Made by a program: the position numbers and the translations under genes. 64,000 nt of DNA from Tubulanus polymorphus (taxonomy: Eukaryota > Animalia > Nemertea), in NCBI RefSeq assembly GCF_964204645.1, contig NC_134033.1, positions 1-64,000 of the forward strand, in the 5' to 3' direction. The notes beneath the pieces are model-generated. The model did no database searches and was not told where the DNA came from. It worked only from the letters and a program-made list of their open reading frames with translations. Shown here in pieces: positions 1 to 12,800 of the stretch. The stretch's first letter is position 1, and each line of letters opens with the position of its first letter.

Positions 1-180
1 GGTGGTGGATTGCTTTTCGGTATCCCTAACTCTAATACCTTCCGGCAGGTGGAGTTAGCCGGCTTTCCCGCTGCCAGTGTCACAGTGGGGTTCTGAAAAG
101 ATATCAGTTAATTACTCTCGATTAATTGTGGTGGGTTAATCTGAAGAACACAAAAACATTAATTGATACTCTGATTGGTT
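1..180 (+). mobile_element. Non-telomeric cap distal to the telomeric array; diverged, inverted homologue of the SINE-like body at about 1977-2130
   Basis: Colinear blocks shared with the reverse complement of 1977-2130: GGTGGTGGATTGCTTTTC vs GGTGGTTGACAGATTTTC (14/18), CTAACTCTAAT vs CTAATACTCTAAT, TAATTAC, GATTAATTG, and GGGTTAAT vs GGGTT(T)AAT. Confidence 0.45.
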
Positions 181-1924
181 CCCCTAACCTATACCTCTAA
201 ACCTAACCCTAACCCTAACCCTAACCCTAACCCTAACCCTAACCCTAACCCTAACCCTAACCCTAACCCTAACCCTAACCCTAACCCTAACCCAACCCTA
301 ACCCTAACCCTAACCCTAACCCTAACCCTAACCCTAACCCTAACCCTAACCCTAACCCTAACCCTAACCCTAACCCTAACCCTAACCCTAACCCTAACCC
401 TAACCCTAACCCTAACCCTAACCCTAACCCTAACCCTAACCCTAACCCTAACCCTAACCCTAACCCTAACCCTAACCCTAACCCTAACCCTAACCCTAAC
501 CCTAACCCTAACCCTAACCCTAACCCTAACCCTAACCCTAACCCTAACCCTAACCCTAACCCTAACCCTAACCCTAACCCTAACCCTAACCCTAACCCTA
601 ACCCTAACCCTAACCCTAACCCTAACCTAACCTAACCCTAACCCTAACCCTAACCCTAACCCTAACCCTAACCCTAACCCTAACCCTAACCCTAACCCTA
701 ACCCTAACCCTAACCCTAACCCTAACCCTAACCCTAACCCTAACCCTAACCCTAACCCTAACCCTAACCCTAACCCTAACCCTAACCCTAACCCTAACCC
801 TAACCCTAACCCTAACCCTAACCCTAACCCTAACCCTAACCCTAACCCTAACCCTAACCCTAACCCTAACCCTAACCCTAACCCTAACCCTAACCCTAAC
901 CCTAACCCTAACCCTAACCCTAACCCTAACCCTAACCCTAACCCTAACCCTAACCCTAACCCTAACCCTAACCCTAACCCTAACCCTAACCCTAACCCTA
1001 ACCCTAACCCTAACCCTAACCCTAACCCTAACCCTAACCCTAACCCTAACCCTAACCCTAACCCTAACCCTAACCCTAACCCTAACCCTAACCCTAACCC
1101 TAACCCTAACCCTAACCCTAACCCTAACCCTAACCCTAACCCTAACCCTAACCCTAACCCTAACCCTAACCCTAACCCTAACCCTAACCCTAACCCTAAC
1201 CCTAACCCTAACCCTAACCCTAACCCTAACCCTAACCCTAACCCTAACCCTAACCCTAACCCTAACCCTAACCCTAACCCTAACCCTAACCCTAACCCTA
1301 ACCCTAACCCTAACCCTAACCCTAACCCTAACCCTAACCCTAACCCTAACCCTAACCCTAACCCTAACCCTAACCCTAACCCTAACCCTAACCCTAACCC
1401 TAACCCTAACCCTAACCCTAACCCTAACCCTAACCCTAACCCTAACCCTAACCCTAACCCTAACCCTAACCCTAACCCTAACCCTAACCCTAACCCTAAC
1501 CCTAACCCTAACCCTAACCCTAACCCTAACCCTAACCCTAACCCTAACCCTAACCCTAACCCTAACCCTAACCCTAACCCTAACCCTAACCCTAACCCTA
1601 ACCCTAACCCTAACCCTAACCCTAACCCTAACCCTAACCCTAACCCTAACCCTAACCCTAACCCTAACCCTAACCCTAACCCTAACCCTAACCCTAACCC
1701 TAACCCTAACCCTAACCCTAACCCTAACCCTAACCCTAACCCTAACCCTAACCCTAACCCTAACCCTAACCCTAACCCTAACCCTAACCCTAACCCTAAC
1801 CCTAACCCTAACCCTAACCCTAACCCTAACCCTAACCCTAACCCTAACCCTAACCCTAACCCTAACCCTAACCCTAACCCTAACCCTAACCCTAACCCTA
1901 ACCCTAACCCTAACCCTAACCCTA
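181..1924 (-). repeat. Telomeric (TTAGGG)n array, C-strand on +; about 286 units
   Basis: Near-perfect CCCTAA from 207 to 1924, with a degenerate lead-in at 181-206 (CCCCTAACCTATACCTCTAAACCTAA). The only variants seen are CCCAA at 291 and two CCTAA at 626-635. Polarity is that of a left chromosome end. Confidence 0.99.
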
Positions 1925-1990
1925 GCCTTATCCCATTAAACCCTAGCCTTATCCCATTAAACCCTAGCCTTATCCCATTAAACCCTAGCT
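1920..1990. repeat. 21-bp tandem repeat CCCTAGCCTTATCCCATTAAA, about 3.3 copies, abutting the telomeric array
   Basis: Exact copies at 1920-1940, 1941-1961 and 1962-1982, then a partial CCCTAGCT. Confidence 0.95.
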
Positions 1991-2090
1991 TGCAATTAAT
2001 CAGAATCATGTATGTAATTAGAGAATTGGAGAATTAGCCTTATCCCATTAACCCTAGCTTAATCAGAATCATGAATGTAATTAGAGAATT
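1965..2090. repeat. Imperfect direct duplication of about 60 bp
   Basis: TAGCCTTATCCCATTA(A)ACCCTAGCTT...AATCAGAATCATG(T/A)ATGTAATTAGAGAATT occurs at 1965-2027 and 2035-2090. Confidence 0.9.
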
Positions 2091-2126
2091 AGAGTATTAG
2101 TGAAGTACGAGTGAAAATCTGTCAAC

Positions 2127-2202
2127 CACCGACACCGGGACTCGAACCACGGATGTCTCGCTTGCAAGGCAGGCGATGCTCTACCACTTGAGCTATCGGG
2201 GC
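2127..2202 (-). pseudogene. tRNA-derived sequence (anticodon TGC, Ala-like); pseudo-tRNA or SINE head with intact Pol III A and B boxes
   Basis: Minus strand reads GCCCCGATAGCTCAAGTGGTAGAGCATCGCCTGCCTTGCAAGCGAGACATCCGTGGTTCGAGTCCCGGTGTCGGTG. A box TAGCTCAAGTGG (2195-2184), B box GGTTCGAGTCC (2148-2138), loop CTTGCAA. The anticodon stem has 4 extra nt, the T stem has a bulge and the acceptor stem is mispaired. Confidence 0.85.
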
Positions 2203-2414
2203 GACTTGCTTGTTTTGATTCGTTCTAAGCCTTCTAGCACAGACTAGAGAACACAGATAGAGATTTGGTGGCTCTTGACCATTAATTACACACCTAATTA
2301 TTAACTCATTGACAATGCCTTTTCATAGGTTGTACACTTGCGTAAGGGTCTCTTCTCTCTGCCTGCAAAGTTTCAAGCTACTTCGATCATCCTTAACGGA
2401 ATTAAAACAAGTTT

Positions 2415-2921
2415 TAAGGGGTTGTTTTCAGTTCTGGACAGAGTATTTTCGCGTATTTTCACCTATCTCCGACACTAATTTTTCCAACCTAGGCTCAACA
2501 GAAGCCCGCATCCGAGGATTTTATGTTTCTATACATACTATAGGGCCCTTTCTAAATACCTGAAATACCTCAGAGCCCTGAGCTTTCTAGAAAGGGTCTT
2601 GCAACCCCCTGAAATGTGGTCGCACGGCCGTCTGAGACCCCTGGTAAATCCGTGCACCAAAAGGTAGAAAGGGGTGACTTGCAGGTCTAGGGTCCTTTTT
2701 ATAAGGTTTGCACACTTTGATTAGACCCTCCCCTAGGTCCCTGAGAAGTTTCAGAGCCCTAGGGTCACTATTAAGGTCGTAGGAGATGTTAGAAGAGGGG
2801 TCGTTTTTCACGTTTTTCATGTCTCGACTTAGTGTATTTTCGCGTATTTTGACACTGATTTTTCGCGTTGGGTCCACACAGACCCAATGGACCCCACACC
2901 CAGGGTTTTTATGGTTTTGTA
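2415..2921. repeat. Diverged direct repeats in a subtelomeric spacer (offset about 391 bp)
   Basis: GTATTTTCGCGTATTTT is exact at 2443-2459 and 2834-2850. Each copy is preceded by GGGGTYGTTTT and followed by GACACT(A/G)ATTTTTC and TTTTATG. CAGAGCCCT occurs at 2571 and 2752. Confidence 0.6.
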
Positions 2922-3003
2922 TCAATACGCCTAAACCCATCTTTTCAGATTGAATCCATCAACTTCAGAAGCATAAGTAGTCAGAAAATTCTGAATCTTT
3001 CAA
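2922..3003 (+). repeat. Orphan partial monomer of the 102-bp satellite
   Basis: TCAATACGCCTAAACCCATCTTTTCAGATTGAATCCATCAACTTCAGAAGCATAAGTAGTCAGAAAATTC matches the rare array variant at about 12454-12523. Confidence 0.95.
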
Positions 3004-3262
3004 TGTCATGACCCATATGCTATATTTTAAATTTCAATATATTATAAGTTACAGTCTATGGTTTTGTATACAGTATTCTCGAGTTGGCATCCAGTCAGAC
3101 CACAAACTATTCCCAATCAACTGTAAAATGTTAACCAACCATATAATCATGTACGCTACAGTCCTCTGAATAATGCCGTTAGTCAGTCGACTTCATATTA
3201 CTACAACGTGTTGGTCGTTTACTTTGGGTCCGCCTTGCTTTGGGTCCGCCACATTCCGGACA
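3004..3262 (+). repeat. 5' LTR (259 bp) of the BEL/Pao element
   Basis: Starts TGTC and ends GACA (4-bp terminal inverted repeat). It begins exactly where the satellite monomer breaks and ends 2 nt before the PBS. Internal CTTTGGGTCCGCC occurs twice (3222, 3238). Confidence 0.8.
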
Positions 3263-3264
3263 TT

Positions 3265-3278
3265 TGGTCCCTCGAGCC
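3265..3278 (+). promoter_or_regulatory. Primer-binding site, tRNA-Tyr-like
   Basis: TGGTCCCTCGAGCC is one mismatch from TGGTCCTTCGAGCC, the tRNA-Tyr-complementary PBS common in BEL/Pao elements. Confidence 0.8.
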
Positions 3279-3293
3279 TCTACTATTAGTGAA

Positions 3294-3630
3294 ATGGAAA
3301 AAATGGAGAAATTCAAAGCGTCTCGTGCAGCTCACCGAGGACAATTTACTAAGCTGAAGTCTAAATGTGATCTAAATGTGTGTAAGGTACGTCATTTTTG
3401 AAAAATATGAATTCAAAATTAGAACTCTTAGAAAGTTTGGACTGTCAAATCTTAGAGGAAGCGGATGTCTATCACATCTTATACAGACTTAGTTGTCGAA
3501 TTCGACGAGTATATTTGAGAACGGAAGCTTGAGGTGGACACATTAGAAATGGCTTTCAGTGAGCTGGCATTAAGGATGAAAGCTTCAACCACAAATTCAC
3601 AAAATTTGAGGGGCGCTAATAGTCAGTCGA
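3294..3630 (+). pseudogene. gag: BEL/Pao gag N-terminal coiled-coil fragment, frameshifted
   Basis: Manual translation across frameshifts gives MEKMEKFKASRAAHRGQFTKLKSK, then LKNMNSKLELLESLDCQILEEAD, then VVEFDEY. Confidence 0.7.
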
Positions 3631-4180
3631 TTGGGTGTTCAACCAATTGGCAAAGAATTAATTAGTACAGGTAGTTTTGGATCTAACGTGCCGAGTAATC
3701 AAGAAGTTGACGTAGTTAGCATTAAAGTTACATGTAATGATAATTCAATAGAAATAATCGAAGCTTTAGTCATCCCCTTGATCACTTGACCCTTAGTTAA
3801 TTTCCAATTCAATCTAAGCAAAATTCCGGAATTCAATGGGTTGAGGTTGGCACGTTTTTGTACGTCTAATAAGATCGATATTCTAATCGGTAGTGATTAC
3901 TATTACAAATTCATTCAGTCCAATCTAATTAAATCTTCAACTGGACCTGCAGCATTAGATTCCAGATTAGGGTACATTATATCTGGACCTGTATTTTATG
4001 AATTTAATTCTAGTCGTTCTGAGACAAATGAGCGTTTTTTGAACCTGAAGAGAATTATTGGAGTCTTGAAACTATTGGTATACAACCAACTACACTGCAA
4101 GAGAATTTCTTTGAAAACTATTGTACCAATTATATTTCTAAGTCAGATAATATGTACATTGCCAGATTGCCCTGGGAAAG
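3631..4180 (+). pseudogene. BEL/Pao aspartic protease (DUF1758-like) C-terminal half and pre-RT linker
   Basis: LGVQPIGKELISTGSFGS...IEALVIPLIT*PL...LRLA...IDILIGSDYYYKFI...GPAALDSRLGYIISGP, then after a frameshift NYWSLETIGIQ...MYIARLPWES. The catalytic D-S/T-G motif is absent. Confidence 0.85.
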
Positions 4181-4245
4181 TGGGCTTTCAGATCAGAGAT
4201 CGAAGGTCGAGACACCACTCATCACCACAAGTAATTTTTTTTCTT

Positions 4246-4253
4246 TATAAATG
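4246..4253 (+). promoter_or_regulatory. TATAAATG start context after a T-run
   Basis: TTTTTTTTCTTTATAAATG overlaps the ATG at 4251. TAAATG is the poxvirus late-promoter/initiator motif, but chance occurrence is plausible in AT-rich DNA. Confidence 0.3.
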
Positions 4254-6597
4254 GGGGAGAATGAACACCAGACAGAAAACAATAATGTTATTAAATATCA
4301 ATATTATTGTCCATATTGTAAAAAATACATTGATAAATCTCAGAAATCGCGTCATGAAAAATCTGCAAATCATATAAAAAATGTTATAGATTTTGAAACT
4401 CCAGAAAATTCCAATGAAAGAAAAGAACGATTAGTAAATATGAATGTGGATGAAATAAAATGTGAAGTTTGTGATGAATCTATAACAAAAAGGAATTACA
4501 ATAGACATCTCGAAACAGAAAAACACCATCCAAATTTGAGAAATAATGTTTTAGGAATAGATTATTTTGATGATAAACCTCAACAAGTAAAAAAACCAAC
4601 TTCAAAAACTAAATCCATTTCAAATAAACCTTACATGGAAAATGTTAGAAATTATATTGATTCACTAGAAATAAAAGATACAATTGAAATATTAGAAACA
4701 TTACGTAGTAAAATTGGTCCTGCAGCTATTATATTTACATTTTTTAAAGTTACAACAATAGAAGATTATAGTAAATTTAATGAAATAATAGAATAAATAA
4801 CAGATTTGATAACAGATGTTGAATATCCAAAAATTAGTATCTCTGGGAAAGTTTTTAAAGTCAGAAGATAAAATGGATTATAATATTCAAACACTCTCTG
4901 AAGAAATAATTTCAAAAACACAAATAAAAGAGAAGTTAGAAAAAATATTTAATGAATTTAAACGTCATATTGAAGAAAGATATTTTGAGGGTTCTAGTTT
5001 AACATTGAATGAAATTATATTTATAGATTTAAATGTTTATAATACAAAAAGAAATAAAACATCAAAAAGTAATAAAATGTTTAAAAATGATTCAAACTTT
5101 ACTACAGAAAAGGATAATTAAGCATCATCTTTTATTAAATTACCATTTACAACAAAAGCAGTAATAAATATTCAAAATGAAGATAATAAATGTTTTCTAT
5201 GGTCAATTATTAGTTGCTTACATCCAACTCAGGAAAATGTTTGTAGAATAACAGATTACCGGAACTATGAAACATTATATAAAATTGATCAATATCCAGT
5301 AACTATAAAAATGATTCCTAAAATAGAAAAAGTTAATAATTCAAAAATAAATATATTTGAATTAATGCAATTACCAGAGACAAAAGGTGAAAATATTGAA
5401 GATTATACATTGGAAGCTTTATATTTAACAGAATATTATGATGATGAAAATGCTATAGATTTGTTATATTACAAAAAAGATGAAAATGAACATTATATGT
5501 GGTTAAAACAAATGGATTTATTCTTTAGAACAGAAAGTGATCATCATCATAAAATTTATCTATGTAGAAAAATGTTTATCTAAATTTATGACTGAGAATA
5601 CATTATTAAAACATAAAGAATTATGTGATAATAAAGATCTTTGTAAATTAATAAATAATGCCAACAGAAAAAGATTATAAATTGAAAATTACTAATCATA
5701 AATTTAAGAATATTGTTCCATTTGTAATTTATGGGGATTTTGAATCGTTGAATAAAGAATTAACTGATCAAGATAGAAAAGAAATATATAAGAAAAAGCA
5801 ATTATTAAAATCAATGGATAAAGGAAATGAATTAAATGAAGACACAATACAAGACCCGCCAATTATAAATACAATTAAAAAAGTTCATCAAAGAGCTGCT
5901 GCTTATGGAATTTATATAAAATCAAATTATCCTAAATTACATGAAAGTAAATATATTTCTTTTAGAGGTGAAGATGTAGTTAATAATTTTTGTAACAAAA
6001 TAATTGAATTAGAAAGTGATTTGGCAGAATTATTAAACAAAAATAAAAGAATAGTTATGACGAAAGAAGATGAAATTGATTTTAATTATGCAACTCATTG
6101 TTGTTATTGTGAAAAACGTTTTTATTCATTTGATAAAAAAGTTAGAGATCATGATCATTTAAATTCAGAATATCGTGAGGCTGCTCATGAAGATTGTAAT
6201 TTACAAGCTAAAAAAGTAAATTTCGTTCCAATATTATTTCATTTATCGGGCTATGATACCCATCTATTTATAAAACAATTATCGGGAAAATTGGGCGCAA
6301 TTAATCAAGAAATAGAAGAATATAATGCTATGAATGGTGTAAATGTAAGAAAATATGATTTTTAACTATTAGCTAAAACATCTGAAAATTATATTTCATT
6401 TCAATTTGGTTGCATTAGATTTTTAGATTCTTATAGATTTCGAGCAAGTTCATTAGATATTTTATCAAAAAGTTTACTTGATAATGATTTTGTTATAACT
6501 CGATATTATTATCCAAATGAACAAGATTTTAAATTATTGGTATAAAGGTGCAATTCCTTATTCATTTTATAAAACACACAATGATTTTAGAATATGA
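4251..6597 (+). pseudogene. Polinton/Maverick (adintovirus-like) protein-primed family B DNA polymerase, N-terminal part, disrupted and truncated before the palm
   Basis: ORFs 4251, 4816, 5311 and 5658 and the DNA between them join into one protein. It has two C2H2-like fingers (CPYC..H..H, CEVC..H..H), EGSSLTL, SSFIKLP..AVINIQNEDNKCFLWSI..LHP, CRKC..HKELC, ExoI FVIYGDFES (5730-5744), endonuclease VII-like CCYC..VRDHDH..AAHEDCNL (6099-6203), ExoII FHLSGYD, RFLDSYRF..SSLD and KGAIPY. In-frame stops at 5119 and 6363, plus several frameshifts. Confidence 0.88.
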
Positions 6598-6604
6598 AGC
6601 TGCA

Positions 6605-6850
6605 GTTAGGGGTAGGGGTACCCGAATGACCCGAAAGTAGGTCGATTTTTTTGACATTTTGGAGGCCCCTAACGACCCCAGAATAGCTAGATCATCAGAA
6701 ACAAGCTGAATCATCATATTCTAGTGTAGGGAAGCGTATTAGACCGTCTAGAAGTTTGAGAACCCAATATTTTTTGAAAAAATTTTTTTTTCGAAATAAA
6801 GTTAGCAAATCTCAGGATCTGGTTTTTAGATAAGTCGCATGGAAAGAGTT
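6605..6850. other. Unique spacer between the PolB break and the satellite; possible DNA-transposon end
   Basis: Abrupt compositional change starting GTTAGGGGTAGGGGTACCCG, followed by long A/T runs. No partner inverted repeat was found in the window. Confidence 0.3.
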
Positions 6851-9800
6851 TTAACCCATCTTTTCTGATTGAATCCATCATCTTTAGAACTAAAAGCAGC
6901 CAGAAAATTCTGTTTCTTTCCACCTATCTATTTGATATCAGTTCAATACACCCAAACCCATCAATTAAGTTAGAATTCATCATCTTTAGAACCCTATTTA
7001 GCTAGAAAAATCTGTATCTTTCAACCCATCTACTCGAAATAAGTTCAGTTTACCTTAACCTATCATTTCGGATCGAGTCTATCATCTTCAGAACCAAATG
7101 CAGCCAGAAAATTCTGATTCTTTCCACCTATCTATTTTAAATCAGTTCAATACGCCTTTACTCATCTTTTCAGATTGAATCCATCATCTTTAGAACCAAA
7201 TGCAGCCAGAAAATTCTGATTCTTTCAACCTATCTATTTTAAATCAGTTCAATACGCCTTTACTCATCTTTTCAGATTGAATCCATCATCTTTAGAACCA
7301 AGAGCAGCCAGAAAATTCTGTTTCTTTCCACCTATCTATTTGAAATCAGTTCAATACGCCTTTACTCATCTTTTCAGATTGAATCCATCATTTTCAGAAC
7401 CAAAAGCAGCCAGAAAATTCTTATTCTTTCCACCTATCTATTTGATATCAGTTCAATACACCCAAACCCATCAATTAAGATAGAATTCATCATCTTTAGA
7501 ACAATATTTAGCTAGAAAAATCTGTATCTTTCAACCCATCTACTCGAAATAAGTTCAGTTTACCTTATCCTATCATTTCAGATCGAGTCTATCATCTTCA
7601 GAACCAAATGCAGCCAGAAAAGTCTGTTTCTTTCCACCTATCTATTTGAAATCAGTTCAATACGCCTTTACTCATCTTTTCAGATTGAATCCATCATCTT
7701 TAGAACCAAGAGCAGCCAGAAAATTCTGTTTCTTTCCACCTATCTATTTGAAATCAGTTCAATGCGCCTTAACCCATCTTTTCAGATTGATTCCATCACC
7801 TTCAGAACCAAAAGCAGCCAGAAAATTCTTATTCTTTCCACCTATTTATTTTAAATCAGTTCAATAAGCCTTAACCCATCTTTTCAGATTGAATCCATCA
7901 TCATCTTTAAAACCAAAAGCAGCCAGAAAATTCTGTTTCTTTCCACCTATCTATTTGAAATCAGTTCAATACGCCTTTACTCATCTTTTCAGATTGAATC
8001 CATCAATTTCAGAAGCATAAGTAGCAAGAAAATTCTGAATCTTTCCACCTATCTATTTGAAATCAGTTCAATACGCCTTAACCCATCTTTTCAGATTGAA
8101 TCCATCATCTTCAGAACCGAAAGCAGCCAGAAAATTCTGATTCTTTCCACCTATCTATTTTAAATCAGTTCAATGCGCCTTAACCCATCTTTTCAGACTG
8201 AATCCATCATCTTCAGAACCGAAAGCAGCTAGAAAATTCTTATTCTTTCCACCTATTTATTTGAAATCAGTTCAATGCGCCTTAACCCATCTTTTCAGAT
8301 TGAATCCATCATCTTTAGAACCATATTTAGCTAGAAAAATCTGTATCTTTCAACCCATCTACTCGAAATAAGTTCAGTTTACCTTATCCTATCATTTCAG
8401 ATCGAGTCTATCATCTTCAGAACCAAATGCAGCCAGAAAATTCTGATTCTTTCCACCTATCTATTTGAAATCAGTTCAATACGCCTTTACTCATCTTTTC
8501 AGATTGAATCCATCATCTTCAGAACCAAAAGCAGCCAGAAAATTCTTATTCTTTCCACCTATTAATTTTAAATCAGTTCAATAAGCCTTAACCCATCTTT
8601 TCAGATTGAATCCATCATCTTTAGAACCAAAAGCAGCCAGAAAATTCTGTTTCTTTCCACCTATCTATTTGAAATCAGTTCAATACGCCTTTACTCATCT
8701 TTTCAGATTGAATCCATCAATTTCAGAAGCATAAGTAGCAAGAAAATTCTGAATCTTTCCACCTATCTATTTGAAATCAGTTCAATAAGCCTTAACCCAT
8801 CTTTTCACATTGATCCATCATCTTTAGAAACAAAAGCAGCCCGAAAATTCTGTTTCTTTCCACCTATCTATTTGAAATCAGTTCAATACGCCCTAACCCA
8901 TCGTTTCAGATTGAATCCATCATCTTCAGAACCAAAAAAAGCCAGAAAATTCTGATTCTTTCCACCTATCTATTTGAAATCATTTCAATACGCCTTAACC
9001 CATCTTTTCACATTGATCCATCATCTTTAGAAACAAAAGCAGCCAGAAAATTCTGTTTCTTTCCACCTATCTATTTGAAATCAGTTCAATACGCCTTTCC
9101 TCATCTTTTCAGATTGAATCCATCAATTTCAGAAGCATAAGTAGCAAGAAAATTCTGAATCTTTCCACCTATCTATTTGAAATCAGTTCAATAAGCCTTA
9201 ACCCATCTTTTCAGATTGAATCCATCATCTTTAGAACCAAAAGCAGCCAGAAAATTCTGTTTCTTTCCACCTATCTATTTGAAATCAGTTCAATACGCCT
9301 TAACCCATCTTTTCACATTGATCCATCATCTTTAGAAACAAAAGCAGCCTGAAAATTCGGTTTCTTTCCACCTATCTATTTTAAATCAGTTCAATAAGCC
9401 TTAACCCATCTTTTCAGATTGAATCCATCATCTTTAGAACCAAAAGCAGCCAGAAAAGTCTGTTTCTTTCCACCTATCTATTTGAAATCAGTTCAATACG
9501 CCTTTACTCATCTTTTCAGATTGAATCCATCATCTTTAGAACCAAGAGCAGCCAGAAAATTCTGTTTCTTTCCACCTATCTATTTGAAATCAGTTCAATG
9601 CGCCTTAACCCATCTTTTCAGATTGATTCCATCATCTTCAGAACCAAAAGCAGCCAGAAAATTCTTATTCTTTCCACCTATTTATTTTAAATCAGTTCAA
9701 TAAGCCTTAACCCATCTTTTCAGATTGAATCCATCATCATCTTTAAAACCAAAAGCAGCCAGAAAATTCTGTTTCTTTCCACCTATCTATTTGAAATCAG

Positions 9801-12800
9801 TTCAATACGCCTTTACTCATCTTTTCAGATTGAATCCATCAATTTCAGAAGCATAAGTAGCAAGAAAATTCTGAATCTTTCCACCTATCTATTTGAAATC
9901 AGTTCAATACGCCTTAACCCATCTTTTCAGATTGAATCCATCATCTTCAGAACCGAAAGCAGCCAGAAAATTCTGATTCTTTCCACCTATCTATTTTAAA
10001 TCAGTTCAATGCGCCTTAACCCATCTTTTCAGACTGAATCCATCATCTTCAGAACCGAAAGCAGCTAGAAAATTCTTATTCTTTCCACCTATTTATTTGA
10101 AATCAGTTCAATGCGCCTTAACCCATCTTTTCAGATTGAATCCATCATCTTTAGAACCATATTTAGCAAGAAAAATCGGTATCTTTCAACCCATCTACTC
10201 GAAATAAGTTCAGTTTACCTTATCCTATCATTTCAGATCGAGTCTATCATCTTCAGAACCAAATGCAGCCAGAAAATTCTGAATCTTTCCACCTATCTAT
10301 TTGAAATCAGTTCAATACGCCTTAACCCATCTTTTCACATTGATCCATCATCTTTAGAAACAAAAGCAGCCAGAAAATTCTGTTTCTTTCCACCTATCTA
10401 TTTGAAATCAGTTCAATACGACTTAACCCATCTTTTCCGATTGAATCCATCATCTTCAGAACCAAAAGCAGCCAGAAAATTCTTATTCTTTCCACCTATT
10501 TATTTTAAATCAGTTCAATAAGCCTTAACCCATCTTTTCAGATTGAATCCATCATCATCTTTAAAACCAAAAGCAGCCAGAAAATTCTGTTTCTTTCCAC
10601 CTATCTATTTGAAATCAGTTCAATACGCCTTTACTCATCTTTTCAGATTGAATCCATCAATTTCAGAAGCATAAGTAGCAAGAAAATTCTGAATCTTTCC
10701 ACCTATCTATTTGAAATCAGTTCAATACGCCTTAACCCATCTTTTCAGATTAAATCCATCATCTTCAGAACCGAAAGCAGCCAGAAAATTCTGATTCTTT
10801 CCACCTATCTATTTTAAATCAGTTCAATGCGCCTTAACCCATCTTTTCAGATTGAATCCATCATCTTCAGAACCAAAAGCAGCCAGAAAATTCTTATTCT
10901 TTCCACCTATTTATTTTAAATCAGTTCCATAAGCCTTAACCCATCTTTTCAGATTGAATCCATCATCTTTAGAACCAAAAGCAGCCAGAAAATTCTGTTT
11001 CTTTCCACCTATCTACTTGAAATCAGTTCAATACACCCAAACCCATCAATTAAGATAGAATTCATCATCTTTAGAACCATATTTAGCTAGAAAAATCTGT
11101 ATCTTTCAACCCATCTACTCGAAATAAGTTCAGCTTACCTTATCCTATCATTTCAGATCGAGTCTATCATCTTCAGAACCAAACGCAGCCAGAAAATTCT
11201 GAATCTTTCCACCTATCTATTTGAAATAAGTTCAATACGCCTTAACCCATCTTTTCAGATTGAATCCATCATCTTCAGAACCAAAAGCAGCCAGAAAATT
11301 CTGTTTCTTTCCACCTACCTATTTGAAATCAGTTCAATACGCCTTAACCCATCTTTTCAGATTGAATCCATCATCTTCAGAACCAAAAGCAGCCAGAAAA
11401 TTCTGATTCTTTCCACCTATCTATTTTAAATCAGTTCAATAAGCCTTAACCCATCTTTTCAGATTGAATCCATCATCTTTAGAACCAAAAGCAGCCAGAA
11501 AAGTCTGTTTCTTTCCACCTATCTATTTGAAATCAGTTCAATACGCCTTTACTCATCTTTTCAGATTGAATCCATCATCTTTAGAACCAAGAGCAGCCAG
11601 AAAATTCTGTTTCTTTCCACCTATCTATTTGAAATCAGTTCAATACGCCTTTACTCATCTTTTCAGATTGAATCCATCATCTTCAGAACCAAAAGCAGCC
11701 AGAAAATTCTTATTCTTTCCACCTATTTATTTTAAATCAGTTCAATAAGCCTTAACCCATCTTTTCAGATTGAATCCATCATCTTTAGAACCAAAAGCAG
11801 CCAGAAAATTCTGTTTCTTTCCACCTATCTATTTGAAATCAGTTCAATACGCCTTTACTCATCTTTTCAGATTGAATCCATCAATTTCAGAAGCATAAGT
11901 AGCAAGAAAATTCTGAATCTTTCCACCTATCTATTTGAAATCAGTTCAATACGCCTTAACCCATCTTTTCAGATTGAATCCATCATCTTCAGAACCAAAA
12001 GCAGCCAGAAAATTCTTATTCTTTCCACCTATTTATTTGAAATCAGTTCAATGCGCCTTAACCCATCTTTTCAGATTGAATCCATCATCTTCAGAACCAA
12101 AAGCAGCCAGAAAATTCTTATTCTTTCCACCTATTTATTTGAAATCAGTTCAATAAGCCTTAACCCATCTTTTCACATTGATCCATCATCTTTAGAAACA
12201 AAAGCAGCCAGAAAATTCTGTTTCTTTCCACCTATCTATTTGAAATCAGTTCAATACGCCCTAACCCATCGTTTCAGATTGAATCCATCATCTTCAGAAC
12301 CAAAAGAAGCCAGAAAATTCTGATTCTTTCCACCTATCTATTTGAAATCATTTCAATACGCCTTAACCCATCTTTTCACATTGATCCATCATCTTTAGAA
12401 ACAAAAGCAGCCAGAAAATTCTGTTTCTTTCCACCTATCTATTTGAAATCAGTTCAATACGCCTTAACCCATCTTTTCAGATTGAATCCATCAACTTCAG
12501 AAGCATAAGTAGTCAGAAAATTCTTAATCTTTTAACCAATCTATTAAAAATCAGTTCTGTACATCCTAACCCATCAATTAAGATAGAATTCATCATCTTT
12601 AGAACCATATTTAGCTAGAAAAATCTGTATCTTTCAACCCATCTACTCGAAATCAGTTCAGTTTACCTTATCCTATCATTTCAGATCGAGTCTATCATCT
12701 TCAGAACCAAAAGCAGCCAGAAAATTCTGATTCTTTCAACCTATCTATTTGAAATCAGTTCAATACGCCTTTACTCATCTTTTCAGATTGAATCCATCAA

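Follow-up and report, generated by a model that had tools for sequence, protein, structure and literature searches.

A telomere tract that is flanked on both sides by short sequences with tRNA-like parts, whose tails face one another across the array, raises the question of whether one retroelement family can associate with telomere repeats in both polarities or whether the two flanks reached their positions separately. Such an arrangement is found at the start of contig C9 of Tubulanus polymorphus (NC_134033.1, positions 1 to 64,000), the first 64 kb of which constitute the window analysed here. The sequence-only reading of this DNA had favoured the former answer. We consider it probable that two independent relics of a single superfamily of short, non-coding retroelements are present in the window, the distal one added through the activity of a Penelope-like element (PLE) and the proximal one marking the place where a chromosome end was formed, so that the bracket is coincidental.

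The non-telomeric stretch at the contig start spans window positions 1-209 and represents the 3' 209 nt, on the plus strand, of a 335-bp tRNA-headed passenger unit that is cut by the contig start. It retains the last bases of a tRNA-like module (1-4), a TTTT (13-16), a CCCGCTGCC...GTGGGG motif (67-90) and a telomere-complementary tail (181-209), all on the plus strand, with the motif and the tail also being present at the 3' end of the PLE. At 207-215 the tail merges without interruption into a (CCCTAA)n telomere tract, C-strand on the plus strand (182-1924; TRF period 6, 290.8 copies, 99% matches), at the proximal edge of which TRF detects 3.4 copies of a 21-bp variant telomere-like repeat (1918-1989, plus strand); a degenerate fourth copy of the variant repeat lies at 2030-2059. 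On the minus strand there follow the body of a copy of a second, ~298-bp family, broken at profile position ~81 (1990-2130, delimited by alignment with interior copies and nhmmer), its degenerate tRNA-like module (2127-2202; Rfam tRNA 22.3 bits, E 0.47, sub-threshold), a spacer (2203-2248), and a 52-nt partial upstream tail (2249-2300), the last two together forming a pseudo-LTR-like 5' boundary of the insertion that is common to interior copies. The adjoining stretch, 2300-6850, is a subtelomeric block common to other chromosome ends (96-98% identity to C16, where it is inverted, and to C51). The tail-to-tail facing of the two elements across the array, pointed out earlier, and the non-telomeric nature of positions 1-181 were confirmed.

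The distal piece belongs to a tandemly arrayed family. Window positions 1-181 are 100% identical to units of 335-337 bp on C65, C32, C10 and C7, and every one of the 40 scored matches of this piece is located at a contig end, on a small unplaced contig or at one scaffold-gap site. The unit comprises, in order, a ~56-nt spacer, the tRNA-like module, TTTT, the body, the CCCGCTGCC...GTGGGG motif and the telomere-complementary tail. A tRNA-like head had been predicted upstream of position 1, and in every other copy of the 335-bp unit such a module (Rfam tRNA, 43 bits) does stand directly upstream of the equivalent of this position, overlapping it by 4 nt. The ~70 additional nt noted earlier in the distal copy (37-108) belong to the element itself, comprising a hairpin and the motif common to the PLE. 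A sister repeat of 353 bp, ~78-80% identical to the 335-bp unit, has the same build with a 47-bit tRNA module. Window 1-209 is probably the innermost unit of a young array of 335-bp passengers, within which the contig stops. A tRNA-headed, non-autonomous family associated with telomere tracts, as had been proposed, does exist, and this piece is a member of it.

The tail of the 335-bp unit recurs at ~5.1-kb spacing on C34 and elsewhere, where it closes a two-ORF element, the PLE. The second ORF matches RVT_1 (1e-7) and GIY-YIG (3e-4; at 21.3 bits, just below the Pfam cut-off of 22.6), and its nuclease residues run IVY-C..C-YVG and then R, H, E and N. Penelope-like nucleases are described with this same order of residues (PMC8557442), and the GIY-YIG domain appears intact. 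The 3' end of the element carries the same CCCGCTGCC...GTGGGG motif and tail as the passenger units, and the interior-copy profile of the ~298-bp family also matches it (nhmmer E 5e-5). The shared ends, along with the co-location of passengers and PLE, suggest that the passengers are mobilised by the PLE reverse transcriptase. Four interior copies of the PLE are 96-99.9% identical, one of them being full length (L056-L059; C3:16.02 Mb and 16.17 Mb, C5:18.13 Mb and C2:15.11 Mb). About 70 nt upstream of the start of the telomeric copies are common to L057 and L059, and given this stretch the true PLE may be longer than 5.09 kb; degenerate CCCTAA-like repeats follow L059.

The family to which the proximal piece (1990-2300, minus strand) belongs is dispersed, with a unit of ~298 bp, and at least 35 of 40 matches of its tail lie >1 Mb from contig ends, in the chromosome interior. 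Its interior copies consist of a ~52-89-nt partial upstream tail, a spacer, the tRNA-like module, a body starting with GGTGGT, the CCCGCTGCC...GTGGGG motif and a C-strand-like tail. They match the partial-tandem insertion form that is known for Penelope-type insertions and their non-autonomous derivatives (PMC8557442). A search for an autonomous partner of this family beside three tRNA-less tail copies (L042, L047 and L050) revealed no ORF of at least 90 aa upstream, and tblastn near the same copies gave no similarity to the telomeric PLE ORFs. The ~298-bp family is older than the 335-bp family; the passenger lineage predates the present telomeric burst and is not confined to telomeres.

At chromosome ends, the arrangement of these elements follows a fixed polarity. 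Passenger arrays and PLE copies at the nine mapped end loci are in C-strand sense with their tails facing the proximal tract, and the tail joins the CCCTAA tract in one orientation at 8 of 8 mapped end loci as well as at L054. The arrays sit between telomere tracts of equal polarity; their distal ends are cut at varying unit positions, and telomere repeats then follow in four of six cases. In a pattern census the tail was joined to CCCTAA at 43 places, of which 5 belong to the 335-bp type (C9:181-215 among them), 6 to the 353-bp type and 32 to the PLE type, and the reversed control pattern did not occur; 39 of the 43 are at contig ends, on small contigs or beside a scaffold gap. The 3' signals held in common, the constant polarity, the differing 5' cuts and the telomere repeats beyond the far ends are all directly observed.

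It is conceivable that these arrays are an ordinary subtelomeric satellite, in which a tRNA-pseudogene repeat was amplified by unequal exchange and the tracts were left by end rearrangements, with no retrotransposition. The arrays are indeed long (~26 units of 335 bp on C65) and near-identical, and the ~100% identity among their units would also be expected from ordinary satellite homogenisation, which would count against a retrotransposition model. Some junctions are irregular as well: on C65 (L037, 8816) position 268 of the 335-bp unit is joined to PLE position 1188, and on C10 (L054, C10:10000-19999, 394-403) PLE position 2680 is joined to position 77 of the 353-bp unit. These two off-tail array junctions may represent template switches or deletions, and they count against our preferred explanation. 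A further point in favour of a satellite is offered by C16, where the telomere tract is interstitial, given the rDNA beyond it, unless the contig is misjoined. Nevertheless, we regard a satellite origin as unlikely, since 11 arrays all have their proximal junction at the tail but are cut at differing points distally, an element that encodes a reverse transcriptase has the same 3' motif and tail, and the sister family occurs as scattered partial tandems of the kind typically left by Penelope-type integration.

A contig that reaches a true chromosome end is expected to begin with CCCTAA, and only 209 nt of the passenger are present here, so an assembly artefact has also to be weighed, in which the first ~200 bases derive from a chimeric or fold-back read on a true terminal telomere. 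This is, however, quite improbable, as the junction 35-mer (C9:181-215) recurs at four other sites of the 335-bp type, with the 353-bp variant occurring at six, and C8 has a whole array between two long tracts (going inward, a tract, a 353-bp array, a second tract, a full PLE, degenerate repeats and an inverted copy of the ~298-bp family as in the window). A fold-back origin of 1-209 was rejected, the tract being of single polarity throughout and 1-209 not being an inverted copy of anything nearby.

The proximal copy tells a different story from the distal one with respect to its ends. Its ordinary 5' insertion boundary is kept at 2300, while its own 3' motif and tail are absent; it stops at profile position ~81, just before the CCCGCTGCC motif (nhmmer on this copy covers hmm 1-71 and 33-81 only), and the variant G-strand repeats begin at this break. 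The junction has a 63-bp local duplication (1996-2037 versus 2059-2100, 93% identical). The breakpoint motif is found only in C9, C16 and C51, with an 87% copy of the element on C8, and all four copies of the junction lie within one shared subtelomeric block; the restriction of the breakpoint to these paralogous ends therefore points to one ancestral event. The distal occupants differ among the same ends, in that C9 carries the 335-bp unit, C16 a piece of the 353-bp unit with rDNA after it, and C8 a full PLE; consequently the tail-to-tail bracket is not a unit. On C16 (L053, C16:166000-175999, 2394-9961) a ~2-kb TTAGGG tract comes first, next to it stand 114 nt from the 3' end of the 353-bp unit, and a complete 18S-5.8S-28S rDNA unit lies beyond.

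The relationship between the two window elements had been argued from 'five colinear blocks', and these did not withstand examination. Local alignment of 1-181 with the reverse complement of 1925-2210 gives a score of 19, which is reached by 97-117 of 500 dinucleotide shuffles (~0.2); only 1-36 versus 2130-2088 is aligned, and the later blocks do not fall at equivalent positions in the family-level alignment. The two elements are true relatives all the same, as established by a profile from five interior ~298-bp copies, which matches the 335-bp unit colinearly through head, body and tail (hmm 3-247, E 1.7e-18). The pairwise test failed because the homologous halves kept by the two window copies barely overlap. 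The tRNA-like head of the distal unit is 75% identical to the proximal head (E 1.4e-7), and the proximal module shares 75-80% identity with its counterparts in the 335- and 353-bp units.

The claim of telomere association fared differently for the two families when their copies were located genome-wide: it stands for the distal family, with 40/40 scored matches at ends, on small contigs or at a gap, and is not supported for the proximal family, which is dispersed in chromosome interiors. The claim of 'both polarities' is not supported by the structure of the proximal copy, which is 3'-truncated and lacks the native C-strand-like tail, its TTAGGG run being a breakpoint and not an element end. 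A single tRNA-headed Pol III SINE family able to integrate into TTAGGG arrays both ways round, in the manner of TRAS and SART taken together, could draw on the fact that two tRNA-headed relatives face one tract from opposite sides and that the same bracket is present on C16, yet it is very improbable, given that the proximal copy lacks its own 3' end in a family whose native tail is C-strand-like, that this family is interior and dispersed with its recurrences being paralogues of one junction, that a TTTT follows the head, and that no passenger array or full PLE copy is set against its flanking tract in the nine mapped end loci. One inverted PLE fragment of 92 bp (PLE positions 4571-4662, 100% identical) does occur on C10, directly after the terminal CCCTAA tract (L031, C10:1-10000, 1329-1420). 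The window carries a caution in this regard: where a repeat borders telomere DNA in the 'other polarity', it may indicate no more than a site of chromosome-end formation.

As regards the class of the passengers, a tRNA-related head with A and B boxes, as in SINEs, is present: all 335- and 353-bp units score 43-47 bits with the Rfam tRNA model, and the proximal head of the window scores 22.3 bits; ARAGORN called no tRNA in the window, the passenger arrays or the interior copies. The tRNA-like part noted earlier is present as a module (2127-2202, minus strand), while remaining sub-threshold in Rfam (22.3 bits, E 0.47) and without an ARAGORN call. The head is not at the 5' end, as interior copies open with the ~52-89-nt partial tail and spacer, and a Pol III terminator, TTTT, stands between head and 3' end, at a distance of 10-16 nt from the module, both in the two telomeric units (335 and 353 bp) and in five of seven copies of the ~298-bp family. 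The 3' end is shared with an autonomous partner, as in SINEs, but this partner is a PLE and not a LINE. Pol III transcription through the passenger is thus doubtful on account of the conserved TTTT, and the Pol III/SINE label given earlier is doubtful as well: the tRNA-like module supports it, while the internal position of the module, the TTTT after it and the PLE partner do not. The position of the TTTT, kept across three diverged families, is that of the terminator site after a real tRNA gene.

With respect to other classes, the hammerhead ribozyme carried by each tandem unit of non-LTR retrozymes is lacking here: Rfam detected no hammerhead at E up to 1-5 in the passenger arrays, one interior copy or the PLE, and no family other than tRNA in the same sequences. 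The PLE-like 3' end and the partial-tandem or head-to-tail insertions are those of non-autonomous PLE derivatives (PMC8557442). Of the features of the Athena/Coprina type, the terminal location and a 3' end made of reverse-complement telomere repeats are present, and an autonomous element without endonuclease is not, as the GIY-YIG match (E 3e-4), the C..C and the R, H, E and N are all found. In the predicted RNA folds of four 3' regions, the motif's GGGG and the tail's CCCC are base-paired, enclosing a hairpin that varies; with z-scores of -1.1 to +0.5, no better than those of shuffles, this pairing is a hint at most.

Various known systems share parts of this organisation. Terminal PLEs of the Athena/Coprina type likewise bear reverse-complement telomere repeats at their 3' ends and are stacked head-to-tail at chromosome ends, all with one polarity and with telomerase-made repeats between them. 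The autonomous element described here differs in keeping a GIY-YIG domain, telomeric Penelope-like elements having been described as devoid of endonuclease, and in having near-identical interior copies; moreover, no hammerhead was detected, and all that the window itself contains of the system is a non-coding passenger. Non-autonomous PLE derivatives with shared 3' ends are known to form head-to-tail multicopies (PMC8557442). The MRC1-type passengers of Chlamys (PMC8557442) and the animal non-LTR retrozymes (bioRxiv 10.64898/2026.07.22.740005) are similarly short and non-coding, with the 3' end of an autonomous PLE and partial tandems or head-to-tail arrays, whereas the units described here have a tRNA-like module, no hammerhead and young families situated on telomere tracts. 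tRNA-derived SINEs with a LINE-shared 3' tail also have a tRNA-related module, in which A- and B-box-like sequences are present, and a 3' end from an autonomous retroelement; here, in contrast, the module is not 5'-terminal and has TTTT after it, a PLE acts as the partner, and partial tandems replace single copies. TRAS and SART, the telomere-repeat-specific LINEs of Bombyx, resemble the present elements in being retroelements within telomere arrays in fixed orientation, but they belong to another retroelement class with another nuclease, and the two-orientation analogy fails. A passenger of a Penelope-like element with a tRNA module was not found in the literature searched.

The preferred reading, of two independent relics, can be set out as a sequence of putative steps. 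The motif and tail of the superfamily would have been copied from the 3' end of the 5.1-kb PLE, which encodes a reverse transcriptase and a GIY-YIG nuclease. On the distal side, the passenger tail would have been joined to a pre-existing telomere tract of C9, in the orientation seen at other ends, with the PLE reverse transcriptase presumably copying the passenger RNA onto telomeric DNA; priming might involve annealing of the tail to the G-strand end, or nicking of the telomere repeats by the nuclease. Telomerase would then re-cap the variably truncated far end of the array. On the proximal side, an old interior-type insertion of the ~298-bp sister family, with its usual partial upstream tail, would have been present already, and a chromosome end appears to have formed inside it, variant and then canonical G-strand repeats replacing its 3' third; such healing is suggested by the sequence at the break. 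Subtelomere exchange would subsequently have spread this junction to other ends.

A broader proposal, that the endonuclease-bearing PLE and its tRNA-module passengers help to build chromosome ends together with telomerase, and that the module and TTTT direct RNA processing or handling, whether as an RNase P/Z site or by giving a small Pol III product, in place of the hammerhead of other Penelope-like elements and not as a SINE promoter, is put forward as a tentative idea that is rather unlikely to hold. The window itself adds a clean junction between a passenger and a 1.7-kb telomere tract, and its broken proximal copy led to the older, interior sister family of passengers. Apart from these elements, the contig-internal portion of the window (6851-64000) is filled by a 102-bp satellite (~560 copies, 88% matches) with a strong C-over-G skew, a fragment of which also occurs within the subtelomeric block (2922-3003). 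A TTAGGG-flanked passenger array is also present 237 kb from a contig end of C10, adjoining a 90-N run (L036, C10:14056000-14065999); this place probably marks where scaffolds were joined at a genuine chromosome end.
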